Part shown: piece after piece, positions 7,579-60,184 of the stretch
How positions within the stretch are numbered: the stretch's first letter is position 1
Layout: each line of letters starts with the position of its first letter
Virus record (IMG/VR): IMGVR_UViG_3300035156_000206
Location: 227,968 to 291,967 of that record
Strand: one strand, 5' to 3'
DNA length: 64,000 bases
Notes under the pieces: model-generated
Told to the model about the DNA's origin: nothing
Seen by the model: the letters and a program-made list of their open reading frames with translations, nothing else
Database searches by the model: none
Program-made: the position numbers and the translations under genes

Positions 7579-8727
7579 TTATTTCCTTTGGATAAGTTTG
7601 GTTTGCAACTCTTTTTGCATCTCGGCTACGCGGTTTGACACGAGCTTACGATGTTTGGCACCTTCTTCGGTGATCTGGAATACTCCCTGGATCCCCGAAA
7701 TAAGTTCTGATTGGACATGCTCGATCGTTGTTAGATCGATAATGCCACGCTGACTTTGTTGCGCAACCGCAATGGACGTCTGCTTCAGCTTGGTAGCTGT
7801 ATCGCGAGCCATTTGGTTGGTAAAGTCATTGATTTGGGTTGACAGCTGGGCACCACGAGCTTGCTCGTCTACCATCATCCCGACCATGAACTGACGCTTC
7901 CAGTTCGGGACAACGTGTGCCTTCACGAGCTTGAACTGCTCGATCAGGTGAACACCATTCTGTTGCATCAAGCGAATTGCCGGTGCCGTTTGATAGGCAG
8001 CCATTTTCAGGCGCTCGAAGTTCGATGCCTTCATGTCGAGACTTACCAAATAGTTCTTGGCATCATTGACTTGTTGGACATCGTAAGGATCTGGGTTGGG
8101 GCCAAGGCTGGCTACGAAGGCATCGGTCTCGACCTGCAGCTCTTCAATCGCCAAGCGGGAAGCAAGCACGAGCTTGTCCAGAGCATGGTACTGATCCATG
8201 TTGGCTTCGTACAGGTCTTCCATGATGTCGAGTCGCTTGCTGATGCCCGAGGAGAATACATCCACCTCATTGACGATCTTTTCCACCTGGGTGGTAGCCA
8301 AATCAAATTGGCCAACGACGCGATCTTTTGTATTGCGGAATTTGTCGAGCCAGCCACCAATGACAGGCAGGCGGCTCTTCTGGTTCAGCACACCAATGTT
8401 GATACCTTTGGCTGCGATGATGATGTTAGTGAGCTTGTCACCAACAAAGTCCAAATCGCTGGACTTGCTGTGTTGCAGCATATTGTCTGCCATATCGGCA
8501 ATACGATCCTGCACATCATCACCGAACGCTACCAGAGCCGTAGGATCTACCTTCACCAGCTGATCCTTGAGCTTACGGATCTCGGCCATTCCTTCTGAGC
8601 TGTACTTGGCCATCGCCGTGTTTAATACAGAAGGACTACCGTTCAGCGAAGCATTTGTCGCTACAGCGGATGAGCCAAAAGGACTCGATTCGCTTGTGCG
8701 CGCAGACTGCGATTTGAACTGTTTCAT
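7579..8727 (-). CDS. telA: toxic anion resistance protein TelA
   Basis: Coiled-coil with AFGDDVQ, QTAPAIRLMQ and VPNWKRQ motifs; start at 8727. Confidence 0.85.
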   Translation of the reverse strand: MKQFKSQSARTSESSPFGSSAVATNASLNGSPSVLNTAMAKYSSEGMAEIRKLKDQLVKVDPTALVAFGDDVQDRIADMADNMLQHSKSSDLDFVGDKLTNIIIAAKGINIGVLNQKSRLPVIGGWLDKFRNTKDRVVGQFDLATTQVEKIVNEVDVFSSGISKRLDIMEDLYEANMDQYHALDKLVLASRLAIEELQVETDAFVASLGPNPDPYDVQQVNDAKNYLVSLDMKASNFERLKMAAYQTAPAIRLMQQNGVHLIEQFKLVKAHVVPNWKRQFMVGMMVDEQARGAQLSTQINDFTNQMARDTATKLKQTSIAVAQQSQRGIIDLTTIEHVQSELISGIQGVFQITEEGAKHRKLVSNRVAEMQKELQTKLIQRK

Positions 8728-8814
8728 TCGATCTCCCTTAACAATGACATCATTATACGGATGGGCTATACGAAAAGTCAACAAATATTTCTGCTAACTT
8801 TGAAACTGAAGGGT

Positions 8815-10059
8815 CTAAGCCAGAATTTGTTTCAGGGAGGTGAACGATTGCTCGATTTCAGCCAATACACCTTTCTTGCGAATGAACTGCTTATCCATCT
8901 GCAAGTCGGCGATCTTGGATGCCGAGGATGTCTCGAGAGCGGACATCAACACAACACATTGCTGTTTCCACGTGGGAACAACTGTCTGCGATATTTGTTG
9001 AATTCGATCTGCCTTGTCTTTACTTGCCATCTGCAACATTCGGATCGCAGGTGCATTCAGAATAACTGAGTGGGCAAGCTTTTCAAGTTCAGTGACCTTA
9101 CGCTCAAACCGAGTAACACTGTCACGGAAGTATGCCAAGTCCTGCCCAGCAAAAATGTTGGTAGTATCGACTGTCTTTTCCATTTCAGGAAGAGTCTTGG
9201 TGAGGTGACGTTCTGTAATGATCTTGCCAGCAATAACGTGCAGGTTCAATAAGGTGAAGTTGTCACGATTGTTCTTGAATACATCATCAAACGAATCAAT
9301 CAATTTGAGCAGTTCAGACACGCTAGACTTCAGTTCCACAACCAGCACGTCCACTCTATTGATATTGTTTTGGAACTTCTGTACAACTTCGTTAACGGAA
9401 GGTACGTACGCTCCTTGACGGATCCAACGCATCAGACCAGATTCTTGTGGAGTGGTGAGGATGGTGGTGAGCTCTTTGGATGCTTCCATTGTGATCAATA
9501 GGTCTTGGATCTTGTCATTGACCTGGGAAGTCTTACCAGATGTCTGCTCTTTGATGATCCCATCGATCAGCGTACCAAACCGAACGCGCTGCTCGTCGGA
9601 ATAATGCAACACGTAGGATGCGTCTGCAATGTCGGCAGCATCAACGATGTTACGTACTCGAGCTATGTCTTTGTGGGAGAGTTTAACACAAAGTGGGTGG
9701 TCGCGGTAGAATGGATCCACCACATCAACACCAACAGCTTTACTCGGGAAAAGTACTTTCCCGGCAGTGCCCTTGGGAGCAGGCTTAGGTATAGGTATAG
9801 GTATAGGTATAGGGGATTTTGGTGCCCGTTCGAGTTCCATCCGCTTCTGCAATTCCTCCCGGACCATGCGCCGTTGTTCTTCGAGGCGCAGATGTTCTTC
9901 GTTGGTCATTACCGATTTGGTAGGATCGTCTACAACAGGAGAAGGCTTTGGTGCTGGAGTAGGCATAGTCCGCGCAGGAGCGGACTTGAATACCTGCTTC
10001 GGTTTGTTTGGTTGTGCCATGGTCGTTACTTTATTTGGGAAGAGCGGTTTCGGTTCCAT
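8815..10059 (-). CDS. TelA-like paralogue with Pro-rich N-terminus
   Basis: APAIRMLQ and VVPTWKQQ match the adjacent TelA; (GGTATA)n repeat encodes PIPIPIP. Confidence 0.7.
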   Translation of the reverse strand: MEPKPLFPNKVTTMAQPNKPKQVFKSAPARTMPTPAPKPSPVVDDPTKSVMTNEEHLRLEEQRRMVREELQKRMELERAPKSPIPIPIPIPKPAPKGTAGKVLFPSKAVGVDVVDPFYRDHPLCVKLSHKDIARVRNIVDAADIADASYVLHYSDEQRVRFGTLIDGIIKEQTSGKTSQVNDKIQDLLITMEASKELTTILTTPQESGLMRWIRQGAYVPSVNEVVQKFQNNINRVDVLVVELKSSVSELLKLIDSFDDVFKNNRDNFTLLNLHVIAGKIITERHLTKTLPEMEKTVDTTNIFAGQDLAYFRDSVTRFERKVTELEKLAHSVILNAPAIRMLQMASKDKADRIQQISQTVVPTWKQQCVVLMSALETSSASKIADLQMDKQFIRKKGVLAEIEQSFTSLKQILA

Positions 10060-10613: not shown

Positions 10614-10946
10614 TTAGCAGGTGAGAATGTTCTTCCCAATGCCTGGCATCATCGGTGGATTGACGTCTACTGGATGATACGGAAACTGTGGGTACACCGG
10701 GAGGACATTAGGTGATGGTGCCTGCTTGTCAATCTCCTTCATCAGGCGCTGAAGCGCTTCATTAGGAGACACCTTAACTGTACCTGGTGCTACTACCGCT
10801 GCTGGCTTAGCCAATGGCGGTGTTGTTTTTGTCAACACAGTGTCCAAATGTTGACAAATCGATAACCATTGCTCTGGTGTAGGGACTTTGTCCCCCGCCA
10901 GCTCAACGAAACCTGTTAACCAATATGCGAATTGTTCTGGGTTCAT
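10614..10946 (-). CDS. small phage protein (MNPEQFAYWLTGFVEL type)
   Basis: ATGA overlap with the ligase stop codon. Confidence 0.75.
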   Translation of the reverse strand: MNPEQFAYWLTGFVELAGDKVPTPEQWLSICQHLDTVLTKTTPPLAKPAAVVAPGTVKVSPNEALQRLMKEIDKQAPSPNVLPVYPQFPYHPVDVNPPMMPGIGKNILTC

Positions 10947-11980
10947 GCTATTTCCTTTCCGATGTTTGCGATATACCAATCTTTACCTACACGATTGACC
11001 TTGCCCATTACTTCTTTTGCGACCAGACCACTTGCTTCAATGGTATCCAGTTCTTCTTTGATGACGTCCGAACCCAGGAACTTCAGGAATGTTCCGATGT
11101 TCTTCACATCATCAGCATCTAGGCCCATTTCGACCACTTTGCCCTTCATCTGCATCAGACGGTTCTCCGTAACCACTTTGGTTGCGAATTCGTTGATGCT
11201 GTTGACCTTCTCCACATCCACCTCAGCCAGAACTTTGACCTTCGATGCCGAGTGCTTCTCGCCTTTTACTTTGAACAGAAGTCCACGCTGGTAAAAACGC
11301 TCGTCTGTGTCTACACAGCTCCAAACAATGCCTTCACCTACGCCATTGTCAACGCCAAAGTGCTTAGCTACTGGGCACTCTGTTTCGACCTCAATTGTCA
11401 GTTCAACCAGTTTGTTTTGGCTCAGCTCAGGGTTGGTGAAATCAATGTCCATCTCCCAAGTTGGGAATTCGAAGATTGAGTACACGTTCTGTGAACTGAA
11501 TGCTTCGCCCATTGCTGAGAAGAGTTCGTCCTGGATGTTTTTGCCTAGGTAGCGAGTTGTTTCGCCCGTGCCGTGACGGATACCAAAGATCACAAACATC
11601 TTTGGTAAGCCACTGATCCCAACACCCTTTTGGATGTTGCCACCGCACCACTCACCGTAGATCGTGAGGGTTTCATCAGTACCCAGGCCGGCCAGTTGGC
11701 GGATATTGCCGAAAGCCAGTTCCCACATTGCTGTACGGGTGTGGACATACTGAGCAAACCCTGCATTGTCACTTTCAGGTGTGATGATGCGCTCACGCGA
11801 TTGAGCCCAAAGTACACCGGACTCTTGCACCACTGACGAATTGGTTCCGTGCAGCTTAACAGTTCCACGGAACTTCAGCACCGGAGCTGGGATTGTGTGA
11901 TAGTTGCACATATCACGGACGTGTTTGACGATCGAGCGAAATTGGTCGATCGATGGGTATTTAATGTGTTCCATGGTCAT
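10943..11980 (-). CDS. Rnl2-family RNA ligase
   Basis: Motif I TVKLHGTN, IYGEWCGGNIQKG, FVIFGI, GEGIVW, FKVKGEKH. Confidence 0.88.
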   Translation of the reverse strand: MTMEHIKYPSIDQFRSIVKHVRDMCNYHTIPAPVLKFRGTVKLHGTNSSVVQESGVLWAQSRERIITPESDNAGFAQYVHTRTAMWELAFGNIRQLAGLGTDETLTIYGEWCGGNIQKGVGISGLPKMFVIFGIRHGTGETTRYLGKNIQDELFSAMGEAFSSQNVYSIFEFPTWEMDIDFTNPELSQNKLVELTIEVETECPVAKHFGVDNGVGEGIVWSCVDTDERFYQRGLLFKVKGEKHSASKVKVLAEVDVEKVNSINEFATKVVTENRLMQMKGKVVEMGLDADDVKNIGTFLKFLGSDVIKEELDTIEASGLVAKEVMGKVNRVGKDWYIANIGKEIA

Positions 11981-12177
11981 TCTCCTTGTTTGGGGACCCA
12001 ATAAAATATGGGATTGTTTCGTTTGTGTTGGCGTTGCCGCTCTTCTACGCCGTACCAATAGGTGCCGCTCCATTCCATCAGAAAGCTCACCACTCCACAC
12101 CGCAGTTGCATCACTACAATATAATGCCCCGGGTTGATTGGTGTTCTTTCGTATATCCCAAAGCGGCGGTTACTCAT
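11977..12177 (-). CDS. hypothetical protein
   Basis: ATGA-coupled on both sides. Confidence 0.6.
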   Translation of the reverse strand: MSNRRFGIYERTPINPGHYIVVMQLRCGVVSFLMEWSGTYWYGVEERQRQHKRNNPIFYWVPKQGE

Positions 12178-30822: not shown

Positions 30823-30850
30823 ATTGATACTTCTAAAACAAACAGACAAT

Positions 30851-30878
30851 AAAAAAGGGCCTCTTGTGGAGGCCCTTT
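30851..30878 (-). terminator. attenuator 1 terminator
   Basis: AAAGGGCCTC-CACAA-GAGGCCCTTT plus T tract, 28 nt before the first tRNA. Confidence 0.92.
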
Positions 30879-30908
30879 CAAAATTTTGTAACATCTTCTA
30901 TGGATGCT

Positions 30909-31022
30909 TTACATTTTGGTAAGACCTCTGAGGGCGATAGTTGAATTCGACGGACGCGAAGCAACAACCGGGTTATTCACCGGGTTGGAATTGCTATTTG
31001 AGTTGCGGACGAATGATTTCAT
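30909..31022 (-). CDS. 37-aa leader peptide MKSFVRNSNSNSNPVNNPVVASRPSNSTIALRGLTKM
   Basis: 7 Asn, 7 Ser, 3 Pro; its 3' end (GAGGTCTT, 30921-30928) can pair with the terminator 5' arm. Confidence 0.75.
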   Translation of the reverse strand: MKSFVRNSNSNSNPVNNPVVASRPSNSTIALRGLTKM

Positions 31023-31048
31023 GATTAACCTAAATGTGTTTGTATTTC

Positions 31049-31054
31049 TATTTA
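31049..31054 (-). promoter_or_regulatory. TAAATA late-type promoter for leader 1
   Basis: 27 nt upstream of the leader ATG. Confidence 0.6.
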
Positions 31055-34832: not shown

Positions 34833-34959
34833 AATATTCCTCGTAAACGATTAGCAAATGCATTTGGAAATGCAGCAAACTTCATTATACGCGGTGTAAA
34901 CAAGATTATCAACAAGGATCGTAAAAAGAAAAACCCGCACAAGGCGGGTTCTCTAATTC

Positions 34960-40879: not shown

Positions 40880-40955
40880 TGGAGGGGCGGGGTGGAATCG
40901 AACCACCGACCTCCTGGATTAACCCTGGCGCTCTCTCCCCCGAGCTTGCCGCCCC
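40880..40955 (-). tRNA. non-canonical tRNA with 6-nt anticodon loop GTTAAT
   Basis: GGGGCGG/CCGCCCC-T-CCA, D and T arms intact; identity not assignable. Confidence 0.5.
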
Positions 40956-41176: not shown

Positions 41177-41250
41177 TGGTGTTGTGTTCAGGAGTTTAAC
41201 CTGAGTCTCTCCCAGGAAGAGGGAACATCCTAACACTAGACGAACACAAC
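41177..41250 (-). tRNA. tRNA-Glu(TTC), atypical loop
   Basis: Loop TCTTCCT, T loop TTAAACT, ACCA end. Confidence 0.7.
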
Positions 41251-42354: not shown

Positions 42355-42439
42355 TGGTGGATCATGATGGAGTCGAACCACCTATGACTAGCATGCTTGC
42401 GGGTTACAGCCGCACCCCTTACCGTTCGGGCAACGATCC
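42355..42439 (-). tRNA. tRNA-Tyr(GTA)
   Basis: Loop CTGTAAC, long variable arm. Confidence 0.92.
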
Positions 42440-42446
42440 AATGTTC

Positions 42447-42531
42447 TGGTGGGTTGGGTAGGGATCGAACCTACTTACCATAAGGAACGGGGGTTACAGC
42501 CCCGCAGCACGACCTTTGTGCCATCCAACCC
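42447..42531 (-). tRNA. tRNA-Tyr(GTA)
   Basis: Loop CTGTAAC, long variable arm. Confidence 0.9.
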
Positions 42532-42539
42532 GGTATTCT

Positions 42540-42758
42540 TTACTTCAACTTCTTGATGTCCATTTTCAGGTCAGCGATCTTTCGCATGGTGCCTGGTACG
42601 TCAAATGCTGGACCCTTACCCTTTTGTTGCAAAGCGAGCTTCATTTCTGACTCGAGCTGTACAACACGGGCTTCCAGGTTTGCAATCTTCTTATCGTTCT
42701 TGGCCATCATAAACTCCTGTTGTTGTGTTAATGAATCAACATGATACATCTTAAACAC
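42540..42758 (-). CDS. small coiled-coil protein
   Basis: AGGAG RBS before MMAK. Confidence 0.65.
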   Translation of the reverse strand: MFKMYHVDSLTQQQEFMMAKNDKKIANLEARVVQLESEMKLALQQKGKGPAFDVPGTMRKIADLKMDIKKLK

Positions 42759-42778
42759 GTTTACTGCAACTTCTAATT

Positions 42779-42853
42779 TGGTAGGGCCGGAGGAGCTCGA
42801 ATCCTCTTTTGCTGGTTAAAAGCCAGCTACTTCACCGTTAAAGTTTCAACCCC
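42779..42853 (-). tRNA. tRNA-Lys(TTT)
   Basis: Loop CTTTTAA, ACCA end. Confidence 0.92.
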
Positions 42854-42867
42854 AAAATTCGGATAAC

Positions 42868-42899
42868 AAAAAAGAGCACCGTCTTTCGAGGGTGCTCTT
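42868..42899 (-). terminator. attenuator 2 terminator
   Basis: AAGAGCACC-loop-GGTGCTCTT plus T tract, 15 nt before tRNA-Lys. Confidence 0.92.
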
Positions 42900-42921
42900 G
42901 TCGTTGGAATAAAATGGAGGT

Positions 42922-43035
42922 TTACTTCTTAGACACTCCACCTTTGACAAAAGCACACACGCGTTTATATTGGGCAGCATACGCTACTTCAATAATAAAC
43001 ATCTCGTGTTGTTCTAGTTGGCAAAGGGTAAACAT
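42922..43035 (-). CDS. 37-aa leader peptide MFTLCQLEQHEMFIIEVAYAAQYKRVCAFVKGGVSKK (not in ORF track)
   Basis: GTGCTTTTGTC (42946-42956) pairs 11 of 11 with GACAAGAGCAC, which overlaps the terminator 5' arm. Confidence 0.75.
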   Translation of the reverse strand: MFTLCQLEQHEMFIIEVAYAAQYKRVCAFVKGGVSKK

Positions 43036-43071
43036 TTTATAATCCAAGTGTTGGGTGATTCGTTATAATGC

Positions 43072-43077
43072 TATTTA
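43072..43077 (-). promoter_or_regulatory. TAAATA late-type promoter for leader 2
   Basis: 37 nt upstream of the leader ATG. Confidence 0.6.
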
Positions 43078-43109
43078 GTGCTGATACTCTCAAAGGCAAG
43101 AGGGTATAA

Positions 43110-43540
43110 ACAGGGTAACAATTCTTATGGGGGCACCGCGTCTACTCGTCCTGTAAATTTGCACAGCAACGCCGCCAGCGCGCGCTATCTACAAGGCCAC
43201 ATAGGCTGCATATGAGTTAGATGTCCGGACATCTGCGGCGCGGTACCTTCATAAGGACTGTCAAAGAACTTAGGTGAGTCACTAGGGAATACCCCAACAA
43301 ATGTAGTCGACATCAACTTTGCGTCAGCTTAGCCGGTTGAATAATCCGGACTTCGTAGGGACACCCTTTTGATGGGGTGAGCTTTGCATCCTCATTCCTG
43401 AGGAAGTTTCCTTGCCATAAAGCTCCATGGAGCACGCGCATTTCATCCGTCTAGTACATTTGCGTCAGTTTGTTTCCGTGGGCTCTTTCCTTCCCACTAC
43501 GTCTTCCACTGGCGTGTGACTCGCCTAAATTCTCTAGGCC
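43110..43540 (-). ncRNA. putative large structured ncRNA (about 430 nt)
   Basis: No credible ORF; many hairpins; CTGACGCAAA twice; boxA-like AGTTCTTTGACA near 43258-43270. Confidence 0.5.
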
Positions 43541-43545
43541 AATAC

Positions 43546-43661
43546 TTTGTTTGACACTCGCGGGGCGTATGGCAGTGTGTACAATCCCATACGGTCGTGC
43601 AAGTATCGTCTGCAAGTCCCACAACGCTCTGGCCGGAGCATCACTGCGAGTGTCAAACAAA
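43546..43661 (-). ncRNA. 116-nt cloverleaf-like RNA closed by a perfect 16-bp stem
   Basis: TTTGTTTGACACTCGC/GCGAGTGTCAAACAAA; arms GCTC/GAGC, TGCAG/TTGCA, CGTATGG/CCATACG. Confidence 0.6.
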
Positions 43662-43668
43662 ATACTGG

Positions 43669-59347: not shown

Positions 59348-60184
59348 TTAGTTTGTGGCGGGCAGCTTGCGCTTGTGAGCGGTGATGTAAAATTGGGTGA
59401 TGATCTTGTCAGCTGCTTCTTCTGGGATCAAGTCGCCCACCAGGAATGCATCAATCTCGGCATATGTCACGCCGAATGCATCTTCGTCTGGCTTACCTGG
59501 CTTCAGATCTTCCAGATCGGCCGTTGGGATCTTCATCGACAGTGCAACTGGGGCACCAAGTTCGATAGCGATCTGGCGAACCTGGCCTTTGTTGAGCCCG
59601 GAAAGAGGTGTGATGTCACAGGCACCGTCACCATGCTTCGTGAAGAACCCCATCAGCGCTTCTGCTGCATGATCGGTACCAACGACCAGGCCTTTGACGG
59701 CACCGGCGATTGCGTACTGTGCGATCATGCGTTGGCGCGCCTTGACATTGCCCTTGATGAAGTCGAACTGGACTGGGTCCTGCTTGGCAATACCATTTTC
59801 CAGCAGCTGACGCATCATCTCGTCCGTTGGAGCTTTGATGTTTACCACCATGCTGCCAGTAGGCTGGATGAATGCAAGCGCTTGCTGGGCTTCAGCTTCA
59901 TCCGCCTGGACGCCATATGGGAGACGAACGGCAATGAACTTGTAGAAATCTGGCGTAACCGCATGCTCGTTGAGCTGGTTTACAGCCATTTGGCACAGCT
60001 TGCCGGTGGTTGTCGAATCAACACCGCCACTGATGCCCAGCACATAAGCACGGCTCCCGCTGTCTTCCAGGTAGTTTGCCAGCAATTGGACACGTCGCTG
60101 GATTTCAAACGCCAGATCAATGGTAGGCAAAACGCCCAGCTCGCGAATGATCTGATGCTGGGTATTACGAGTGTTGTATTTCAT
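59348..60184 (-). CDS. nadE: ammonia-dependent NAD+ synthetase
   Basis: LGISGGVDST, GNVKARQRM, GTDHAAE, GFFTKHGDG, PTADLED. Confidence 0.96.
   Translation of the reverse strand: MKYNTRNTQHQIIRELGVLPTIDLAFEIQRRVQLLANYLEDSGSRAYVLGISGGVDSTTTGKLCQMAVNQLNEHAVTPDFYKFIAVRLPYGVQADEAEAQQALAFIQPTGSMVVNIKAPTDEMMRQLLENGIAKQDPVQFDFIKGNVKARQRMIAQYAIAGAVKGLVVGTDHAAEALMGFFTKHGDGACDITPLSGLNKGQVRQIAIELGAPVALSMKIPTADLEDLKPGKPDEDAFGVTYAEIDAFLVGDLIPEEAADKIITQFYITAHKRKLPATN

Follow-up and report, generated by a model that had tools for sequence, protein, structure and literature searches.

A putative leader-peptide attenuator in front of the tRNA genes of a giant phage

Introduction

Leader-peptide attenuation is textbook regulation for the amino-acid operons of enterobacteria, typified by trpL, hisL, pheL, thrL, leuL and the multivalent ilvL of ilvGMEDA. 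In these systems a short translated leader is followed by an intrinsic terminator before the first regulated gene; an antiterminator shares bases with the terminator arm, while its upstream partner (region 1) lies inside the leader ORF. The leader codons correspond to the product of the operon, and ilvL and thrL already respond to more than one amino acid. T-box riboswitches are likewise terminator/antiterminator switches placed before translation-related genes and responding to tRNA status; however, they bind uncharged tRNA directly through a specifier codon and the T-box motif, and have no leader peptide. On the phage side, tRNAs encoded by phages have recently been shown to rescue infection from tRNA-cleaving defenses, namely the T5 tRNA-Tyr against retron-Eco7 PtuAB, tRNA-Lys against PrrC170, and a viral tRNA against PARIS (PMC11555353, PMC11464382). 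How the expression of such tRNAs is tuned is hardly known: in T5 the protective tRNA-Tyr is reported to be driven by a strong promoter (PMC11555353), and no feedback or attenuator control has been described. In our literature searches we found no description of leader-peptide attenuation in front of tRNA genes or in a phage tRNA array.

Against this background, we examined a stretch of 64,000 nucleotides (hereinafter the window; positions 227,968 to 291,967 of IMG/VR record IMGVR_UViG_3300035156_000206). An earlier note, made from the sequence alone, had proposed that the large tRNA array therein is headed by a promoter, a translated leader and an antiterminator competing with a terminator. 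Our analysis confirms that these elements exist on the minus strand (Table 1), and comparison with relatives upholds the proposal beyond what one sequence could show, although promoter function, translation of the leader, the control of termination by stalling and the sensing of tRNAs are inferred.

Results

The locus and its relatives

Table 1. Features of the putative attenuator and its surroundings (window coordinates)
Coordinates	Strand	Feature	Observations
43071-43077	-	TAAATAG promoter-like motif, 35 nt before the leader ATG	Invariant in 8 of 9 relatives, TAAATAT in L137; the same motif lies 30-45 nt before the start codons of other genes in the tRNA region of the window and its relatives; promoter function inferred
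43043-43046	-	Weak Shine-Dalgarno-like TGGA or AGGA, 8-11 nt before the ATG	Present in 8 of 9 relatives, missing in L006; weaker than the AGGAG of the neighboring 56-aa ORF
42922-43035	-	Leader ORF, 37 codons plus TAA (stop at 42924-42922)	Head (codons 1-24) conserved, tail (codons 25-37) variable; called as a gene in L007, L008, L136, L138 and L139
43005-43027	-	Region 1, 5' strand of the predicted anti-antiterminator (codons 3-11)	In the full-length minimum-energy fold of all nine sequences, region 2 pairs with ORF positions about 8-36
42962-43001	-	Hairpin P1 inside the ORF	RNAalifold consensus; 3' arm carries the invariant TAT AAA (Tyr, Lys) codons; apical stem covaries, lower stem invariant
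42946-42956	-	Region 2, 5' strand of the antiterminator (codons 27-30), GTGCTTTTGTC	Pairs 11 of 11 with GACAAGAGCAC (42902-42892), with one G-U pair; helix kept with different sequences in all nine; core begins 8-12 nt after the first base of the AAA codon
42911-42944	-	Nested hairpin enclosed by the antiterminator, holding the stop codon	A hairpin is present in all nine with unrelated sequences; stop codon between the two antiterminator strands in 9 of 9
42892-42902	-	Region 3, 3' strand of the antiterminator	Overlaps the 5' arm of the terminator; in each sequence 6-10 antiterminator pairs use bases of that arm
42868-42899	-	Intrinsic terminator: 8-9 bp stem, C.C mismatch, 2 bp, GAAA loop, six T	-12 to -17 kcal/mol with 6-7 U in all nine, 12-18 nt before tRNA-Lys; compensatory changes in the stem
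42782-42853	-	tRNA-Lys(UUU) with an unusual D arm, 14 nt after the T-run	Missed by ARAGORN; Rfam tRNA 48.5 bits; folds as a cloverleaf with a 6-bp D stem; the same odd tRNA follows the leader in all relatives
42741-42769	-	Sigma-70-like promoter TTGCAG, 17 nt, TATCAT, between tRNA-Lys and the next ORF	Also in L010 and L137; absent in L004, L007, L136, L138 and L139, where the ORF follows tRNA-Lys directly
42540-42710	-	Lys-rich ORF of 56 aa with a strong Shine-Dalgarno sequence	Twenty-three protein clusters; inside a tRNA array at every locus examined
42355-42531	-	Two tRNA-Tyr(GUA) genes	ARAGORN
42341-42312		Sigma-70-like site	Weak, 9 of 12
38574		TAAATAG	Internal promoter-like site
34925-34949	-	Terminator-like hairpin with T-run just after tRNA-Asp	Lenient terminator scan, -8.0 kcal/mol; likely end of the array's transcription unit
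31054-31048		TAAATAG of attenuator 1
31022-30909		Leader ORF of attenuator 1
about 30878-30851		Terminator of attenuator 1

The terminator was missed by a simple pattern scan, which counts its loop as 10 nt, but ViennaRNA and a more lenient scan recover it at -13.6 to -17.4 kcal/mol. The leader as a whole folds with z = -5.1. Of only five terminator-like sites on this strand between 30 and 44.5 kb, two belong to this attenuator and to a second one in the window (attenuator 1), and two close the two arrays.

Protein-level searches went through the neighboring 56-aa protein. Eight further distinct versions of the arrangement came from metagenomes (their loci carry L-numbers in Table 1), all of which keep the motif, the ORF, the terminator and the tRNA-Lys. 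The ORF is 34-40 codons long and stays in frame across indels of 3, 6 or 9 bases in the nine sequences, with variable sites at codon positions 1/2/3 numbering 12/10/20; a profile search found eight clusters of 34-40 aa. While the earlier note described the ORF as unannotated, gene callers did call it in several relatives. In contrast, five more distant phage loci with the same 56-aa protein (L131-L135) lack the leader. Near and distant blastn searches of GenBank phages with the region found no match, nor did tblastn with the 56-aa protein; the closest protein-level relatives are jumbo phages of Ralstonia and Xanthomonas, at about 45% identity for RNA ligase. Scans of IMG/VR returned only the window's own contig and one distant phage with the same tRNA-Lys but a different upstream element; a scan of GTDB genomes gave nothing, and an AT-rich pattern scan returned more than 100 chance hits and was discarded. 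A generic screen of 186 tRNAs in 27 loci for a terminator directly upstream of a tRNA found only this family, so no wider generality is shown.

Competing RNA folds

The antiterminator helix covaries with the terminator arm. It scores -19 to -37 kcal/mol against -12 to -16 for the terminator in every sequence, and in a partner-swap test the cognate duplexes average -22.1 kcal/mol, whereas the best of 14,833 derangements averages -17.6. The bases shared with the terminator arm imply that the two folds exclude each other. In the predicted full-length minimum-energy fold of all nine sequences, region 1:2 pairing is combined with the terminator, 4-16 kcal/mol below the antiterminator state; this pairing rests on folding rather than on covariation, as region 1 hardly varies. 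The lower stem of P1, which holds the Phe-Ile-Ile-Glu and Gln-Tyr-Lys codons, is invariant even at synonymous sites; hence, part of the peptide conservation is RNA constraint.

Composition of the leader and the downstream tRNAs

Up to the invariant Lys codon, 22 of the 23 residues after Met1 belong to the amino acids of the downstream tRNAs (P = 8e-5), with all 12 types (Lys, Tyr, Glu, Ile, Val, Ala, Leu, Phe, Gln, Met, Cys and His) present; the residue count of the earlier note is right. After scanning every array prefix, 75 of 200,000 random peptides do as well. Reaching at least 22/23 with all 12 types present occurs in 1 of 200,000 random peptides and in 1 of the 1,249 ATG-started open 24-mers in all six frames of the window, the latter being the leader itself. 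The note had taken the array to 35.2 kb; however, its natural end is likely the terminator just after tRNA-Asp (34933). The set therefore has 13 types, with Asp absent from the window's leader head, and the statistic weakens to P = 5e-4 but holds. Over 14 variants, 59 of 67 distinct head states lie in the 13-type set (P = 9e-6), whereas the tail is at background, 40 of 64 (Fisher test head versus tail, P = 0.001). The bias ends at the last codon at which a stalled ribosome would still leave the antiterminator free. The note had also remarked that the three Gln codons are CAA, matching tRNA-Gln(TTG); this is true of the window, but relatives use CAG, and the detail is not conserved. We looked for a relation between residue order in the leader and tRNA order in the array, and found nothing robust.

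Independent support for leader codons matching the downstream tRNAs comes from attenuator 1: 17 of 30 residues of its leader are Asn, Ser or Pro (P = 2e-7), and it precedes tRNA-Pro, Asn, Pro, Asn and Ser.

Discussion

A plausible mechanism and its alternatives

We propose that this is a ribosome-mediated transcription attenuator of the trp/his/ilv type that controls phage tRNA genes instead of biosynthetic genes. Briefly, transcription would start a few bases after the TAAATAG motif, with the leader translated as it is made. If the ribosome runs smoothly into codons 25-37, or no ribosome loads, region 2 is covered or held by region 1, the terminator forms, and RNA polymerase stops before tRNA-Lys. 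If, however, the ribosome stalls anywhere in codons 2-24, region 1 is masked and region 2 is free; the stable antiterminator then forms, and polymerase reads into tRNA-Lys and, where no internal promoter or stop intervenes, on into the array. Shortage of any of the tRNAs represented in the head would thereby switch the array on, and the new phage tRNAs would switch it off again. In the absence of experimental data, for a phage known only from metagenomes and whose host is unknown, we place the probability of this reading at roughly 0.65. Certain features temper it: the Shine-Dalgarno motif is weak, and each amino acid occurs only 1-3 times in the head, unlike the codon runs of classical leaders, such that sensitivity to mild shortage would be low. 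The favored residues are also helix formers, and a helical micropeptide could mimic the compositional bias, although the complete absence of Arg and the case of attenuator 1 argue against this. Moreover, in the window, L010 and L137 only tRNA-Lys is certainly under the attenuator on account of the sigma-70-like promoter that follows it, and the internal promoter-like sites may make the distal array independent of the attenuator, a possibility that the note had itself raised for the site at 42341-42312.

Among the alternatives, the least unlikely is that the attenuator reports general translation capacity, such as ribosome loading or the overall elongation rate after host shut-off, with the amino-acid match being a by-product. 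The architecture only requires that ribosome position decides the fold, and the sparse representation of each amino acid suits a coarse sensor; nevertheless, the match of the head to the downstream tRNAs stops at the last permissive stall codon, and two matches in one genome are hard to explain as by-products. Less likely still is a riboregulator set by a protein or small ligand binding P1, with the reading frame merely carried along. The invariance of the lower stem of P1, together with the covariation of its apical stem, is typical of a recognized RNA element, but the frame is kept through several indels along with a conserved ATG and a stop codon always inside the antiterminator, third-position variation is in excess, and no Rfam family matches. 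Comparably unlikely is an ordinary small gene for a micropeptide, possibly also yielding a stable short RNA acting in trans, with tRNA-Lys made by leaky read-through. Promoter-like motif, ORF and terminator do form a complete unit, and the conserved head of the peptide is rich in helix formers; however, the tail of the peptide is not conserved and follows the RNA pairing instead, a covarying helix that competes with the terminator has no role in a plain gene, and tRNA-Lys has no promoter of its own in the 14-18 nt after the terminator.

A more far-reaching possibility, which we hold only tentatively and at somewhat less than even odds, is that phages of this clade run their tRNA arrays under feedback control by tRNA-pool sensors, each array being headed by a leader peptide that spells out the amino acids of the tRNAs behind it. 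Loss of any one of about 13 tRNA species, through codon mismatch with the host or through host anticodon nucleases, would stall the ribosome, open the attenuator and restore that tRNA. This would be a self-adjusting counter-defense, a compact and portable sensor of tRNA depletion, and the first case of tRNA genes governed by leader-peptide attenuation.

Comparison with known systems

As with the phage tRNAs used against tRNA-cleaving defenses, the large tRNA block opens with Lys and Tyr, the species shown to be targeted and replaced in those systems (PMC11555353, PMC11464382); the link to anticodon nucleases drawn in the earlier note is plausible context rather than evidence. With T-box riboswitches the locus shares the terminator/antiterminator switch, but it has a conserved ORF and nothing in it matches the Rfam T-box model at E <= 10. 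No other Rfam family matches 42854-43088 even at that threshold, and the only leader-family hits in the region are sub-threshold Thr and Leu leader hits on an ordinary bidirectional terminator at 29.7 kb.

In comparison with the leader-peptide attenuators of amino-acid operons, the regulated genes are tRNAs in a phage rather than biosynthetic enzymes; the head samples 12-13 amino acids once to three times each instead of carrying runs of one codon; and the stop codon lies inside the antiterminator rather than between regions 1 and 2. Attenuator 1 has the same motif, the same ORF length, the same design of an antiterminator enclosing the stop codon plus a terminator, and tRNAs directly behind; however, there is no recognizable sequence similarity in the peptide, and it carries runs of Asn, Ser and Pro codons in the classical style before its five-tRNA unit. 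If tRNA supply is indeed the signal, the design would widen the known range of attenuators, with one leader monitoring a dozen amino acids and a paralogue in the same genome monitoring three.

Organization of the leader region and the downstream tRNA genes

The elements of the leader and the genes behind it lie on the minus strand and are collected in the table below. The predicted intrinsic terminator comprises an 8-9 bp stem, a C.C mismatch, two more pairs, a GAAA loop and then six T, and is followed 14 nt after the T-run by tRNA-Lys(UUU). This tRNA, with its 6-bp D stem and 4-nt loop, is often missed by ARAGORN, as it was here, but it is scored at 48.5 bits by the Rfam tRNA model and folds as a cloverleaf. 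A simple terminator scan likewise missed the terminator hairpin because it counts a 10-nt loop, whereas ViennaRNA gives it -13.6 to -17.4 kcal/mol. The leader as a whole folds with z = -5.1, and the 11-bp pairing proposed in the earlier note, between 42956-42946 and 42902-42892, is exact, with one G-U pair.

Further downstream, a sigma-70-like promoter and a Lys-rich ORF of 56 aa with a strong ribosome-binding site are followed by two tRNA-Tyr genes and then by tRNAs for Glu, Ile, Val, Ala, Leu, Phe, Gln (two), Met, Cys, His and Asp. Within this region we also noted two irregular tRNA-like genes: one has a 6-nt anticodon loop, with its anticodon left undetermined by ARAGORN, while the other is Glu-like (UUC) and is seen only by Rfam. 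On the other side of the leader, the 580-nt stretch that separates it from tRNA-Leu(UAA) lacks an ORF, folds with z = -5.1, including a 23-bp closing stem, and has no Rfam match. Relatives have 0.6-1.1 kb of ORF-free DNA in the same place with only short conserved blocks; it may be a structured non-coding RNA.

Coordinates of the features discussed, in the window unless a relative's locus is named
Feature	Coordinates	Strand
TAAATAG motif	43077-43071	minus
Weak TGGA, 8-11 nt before the start codon		minus
Leader ORF, 37 codons	from 43035; stop 42924-42922	minus
P1, hairpin inside the ORF	43001-42962	minus
Hairpin holding the stop codon	42944-42911	minus
Intrinsic terminator (predicted)	42899-42868	minus
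tRNA-Lys(UUU)	42853-42782	minus
Sigma-70-like promoter	42769-42741	minus
Lys-rich ORF, 56 aa	42540-42710	minus
Two irregular tRNA-like genes	40880-40955 and 41180-41250	minus
Terminator-like site just after tRNA-Asp	34933	minus
Terminator-like site after the small array	30122	minus
Second attenuator, whole element	30845-31054	minus
Second attenuator, TAAATAG motif	31054-31048	minus
Second attenuator, ORF of 37 codons	31022-30909	minus
Second attenuator, terminator	about 30878-30851	minus
Stretch without an ORF, before the leader	43089-43668	minus
Other TAAATAG sites before genes, window	32131, 32461, 38574	minus
Other TAAATAG sites before genes, relatives	L004:944, L136:3216, L138:3555, L139:2957, L007:7218	
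RNA ligase, two tellurite-resistance-like genes and NAD synthetase	10943-12100, 7579-10059, 59348-60184	minus
tRNA with anticodon CUA	L136:937-1024	
Permuted (two-piece) tmRNA	L007:2465-2791	

Conservation in related phages

The window is part of a 292-kb IMG/VR contig, for which we found no match at the DNA level among GenBank phages. Its RNA ligase, which could serve tRNA repair, is about 45% identical to those of jumbo phages of Ralstonia and Xanthomonas. A metagenome scan with the 5' half of the odd tRNA-Lys recovered two loci with homologous leaders (L004 and L006), and homologues of the 56-aa protein, followed by contig look-ups, gave six more distinct ones (L010, L007, L136, L137, L138 and L139). 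All nine distinct sequences, window included, share the TAAATA(G/T) motif, an ATG, an ORF of 34-40 codons kept in frame through several indels of 3, 6 or 9 bases, a terminator with 6-7 U, and tRNA-Lys 12-18 nt later. Gene callers called the ORF in five of these loci (L007, L008, L136, L138 and L139, with L008 repeating the L007 sequence), and a profile search of 1.84 billion representative proteins found eight clusters of 34-40 aa, five of them new variants. Scans of IMG/VR and of GTDB genomes gave no further copy.

The Lys-rich protein of 55-56 aa, found in the window and in L131-L139, has no Pfam family and falls into 23 clusters; in every locus examined it lies inside a phage tRNA array, including those of more distant phages that lack the leader. 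In two more distant phages (L003 and L005), the same tRNA-Lys is instead preceded by a 14-codon ORF with a strong ribosome-binding site, whose stop codon is enclosed by a conserved long-range G-rich/C-rich stem, and there is no terminator. Among 186 tRNAs in 27 loci, a terminator directly before a tRNA occurs only in the family described here. Other peculiarities of the relatives include a tRNA with anticodon CUA, like an amber suppressor, in L136, and a permuted (two-piece) tmRNA in L007, scoring 103 bits and about 1.9 kb upstream of the leader, of which no counterpart was found in the window.

TAAATAG also lies 30-45 nt before the start codons of other, ordinary genes in the tRNA region, both in the window and in relatives, and is often followed by TATAAT-like bases. 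Hence, we infer that it is probably a promoter class of this phage clade.

Predicted alternative RNA folds

With the 3' arm of the terminator left out, every sequence folds into a long antiterminator, in which a helix joins the stretch just after the conserved TATAAAC to the 5' arm of the terminator and encloses a further hairpin. This fold scores -19 to -37 kcal/mol, against -12 to -16 for the terminator. The helix sequences differ widely between relatives but stay complementary: at two shared positions U-A changes to C-G and the 3' arm of the terminator follows, so that three strands change together. In a partner-swap test, cognate strands average -22.1 kcal/mol and none of 14,833 derangements does better than -17.6. 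In each sequence 6-10 antiterminator pairs use bases of the terminator arm; thus, the two folds exclude each other. For the complete leader, the minimum-energy fold in 9 of 9 pairs the 5' strand of the antiterminator (region 2) with codons 3-12 (region 1) and forms the terminator, lying 4-16 kcal/mol below the best antiterminator state. P1 has an invariant lower stem and a covarying apical stem.

The stop codon lies between the two antiterminator strands in 9 of 9, and the antiterminator core begins 8-12 nt after the first base of an AAA (Lys) codon that is invariant in the nine DNA sequences. From established footprint sizes, we infer that a ribosome with this codon in its A site would just abut the 5' strand of the antiterminator. 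Stalls at codons 2-24 would therefore free region 2, whereas any ribosome further on would cover it.

Correspondence between the leader peptide and the tRNA genes

In the window, 22 of the 23 residues after Met1, up to the Lys codon, belong to the 12 amino acids of the tRNAs from Lys to His, and all 12 occur. Given a background frequency of 0.588 for this set, the binomial P is 8e-5, and after scanning every prefix of the array 75 of 200,000 random peptides do as well. Both properties together occur in 1 of 200,000 random peptides, and in 1 of 1,249 real ATG-started 24-mers of the window, which is the leader itself. A lenient terminator scan finds only five sites on this strand between 30 and 44.5 kb, namely the two attenuators, one weak site, one just after tRNA-Asp and one after the small array. 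The natural set therefore includes Asp, which gives P = 5e-4, with Asp missing from the head of the window's leader; however, two of the new variants do carry Asp there. Over 14 variants, 59 of 67 distinct column-residue states in the head lie in this 13-type set (P = 9e-6), while the tail is at background with 40 of 64 (Fisher test, head against tail, P = 0.001). No Arg occurs in any head, and the window has no tRNA-Arg.

The favoured residues are also helix formers, which is a possible confound, and part of the conservation is RNA constraint, since the lower stem of P1 is invariant at synonymous sites. Translation of the ORF is favoured by the maintenance of its frame, the conserved ATG, the ribosome-binding motif present in 8 of 9 and the distribution of variable sites, which number 12/10/20 at codon positions 1/2/3; however, that motif is weak and is absent in L006. 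The tail of the peptide is not conserved and follows the RNA pairing, which argues against a plain micropeptide gene.

Much of the doubt arising from the helix-former bias is removed by the second attenuator in the window, which the earlier note had listed as attenuator 1. It has the same TAAATAG motif and an ORF of the same length, and its antiterminator again encloses the stop codon and competes with a terminator. Of its first 30 residues after Met, 17 are Asn, Ser or Pro (P = 2e-7), with runs of regulatory codons in the classical style, and the genes behind it are tRNA-Pro, Asn, Pro, Asn and Ser. In contrast, the head of the leader before tRNA-Lys has none of these three residues.

Proposed mechanism and comparison with known systems

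The comparative evidence confirms the arrangement described in the earlier note and supports its reading of the element as an attenuator, in which an antiterminator competes with a terminator ahead of tRNA genes; that stalling in the leader decides termination and that tRNA supply is the signal are inferred. Briefly, we propose classical ribosome-mediated attenuation, wherein smooth translation, or no translation, gives termination before tRNA-Lys, and a stall in codons 2-24 gives the antiterminator and read-through. Because the head samples the amino acids of the array, a lack of any of these tRNAs would turn the array on, and the phage tRNAs would then turn it off. The window, L010 and L137 have a promoter-like site after tRNA-Lys, so only tRNA-Lys is certainly under the attenuator there; the other relatives lack this site. 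Our confidence in the architecture is high, and we place the probability of the full mechanism, including its dependence on translation, at about 0.65, whereas the sensing of specific tRNAs is a tentative proposal that is at best about as likely as not.

The element conforms to the structural criteria of leader-peptide attenuators, with the pairing of regions 1 and 2 resting on the predicted folds, but it matches no Rfam leader family and no T-box model. Leader-peptide attenuation is a known kind of regulation, whereas in the literature searched we found nothing on attenuators before phage tRNA genes. Work on T5 shows that phage tRNA-Tyr and tRNA-Lys counter retron-Eco7 and PrrC170, and that a viral tRNA neutralises PARIS (PMC11555353, PMC11464382), which makes tRNA depletion a realistic signal.
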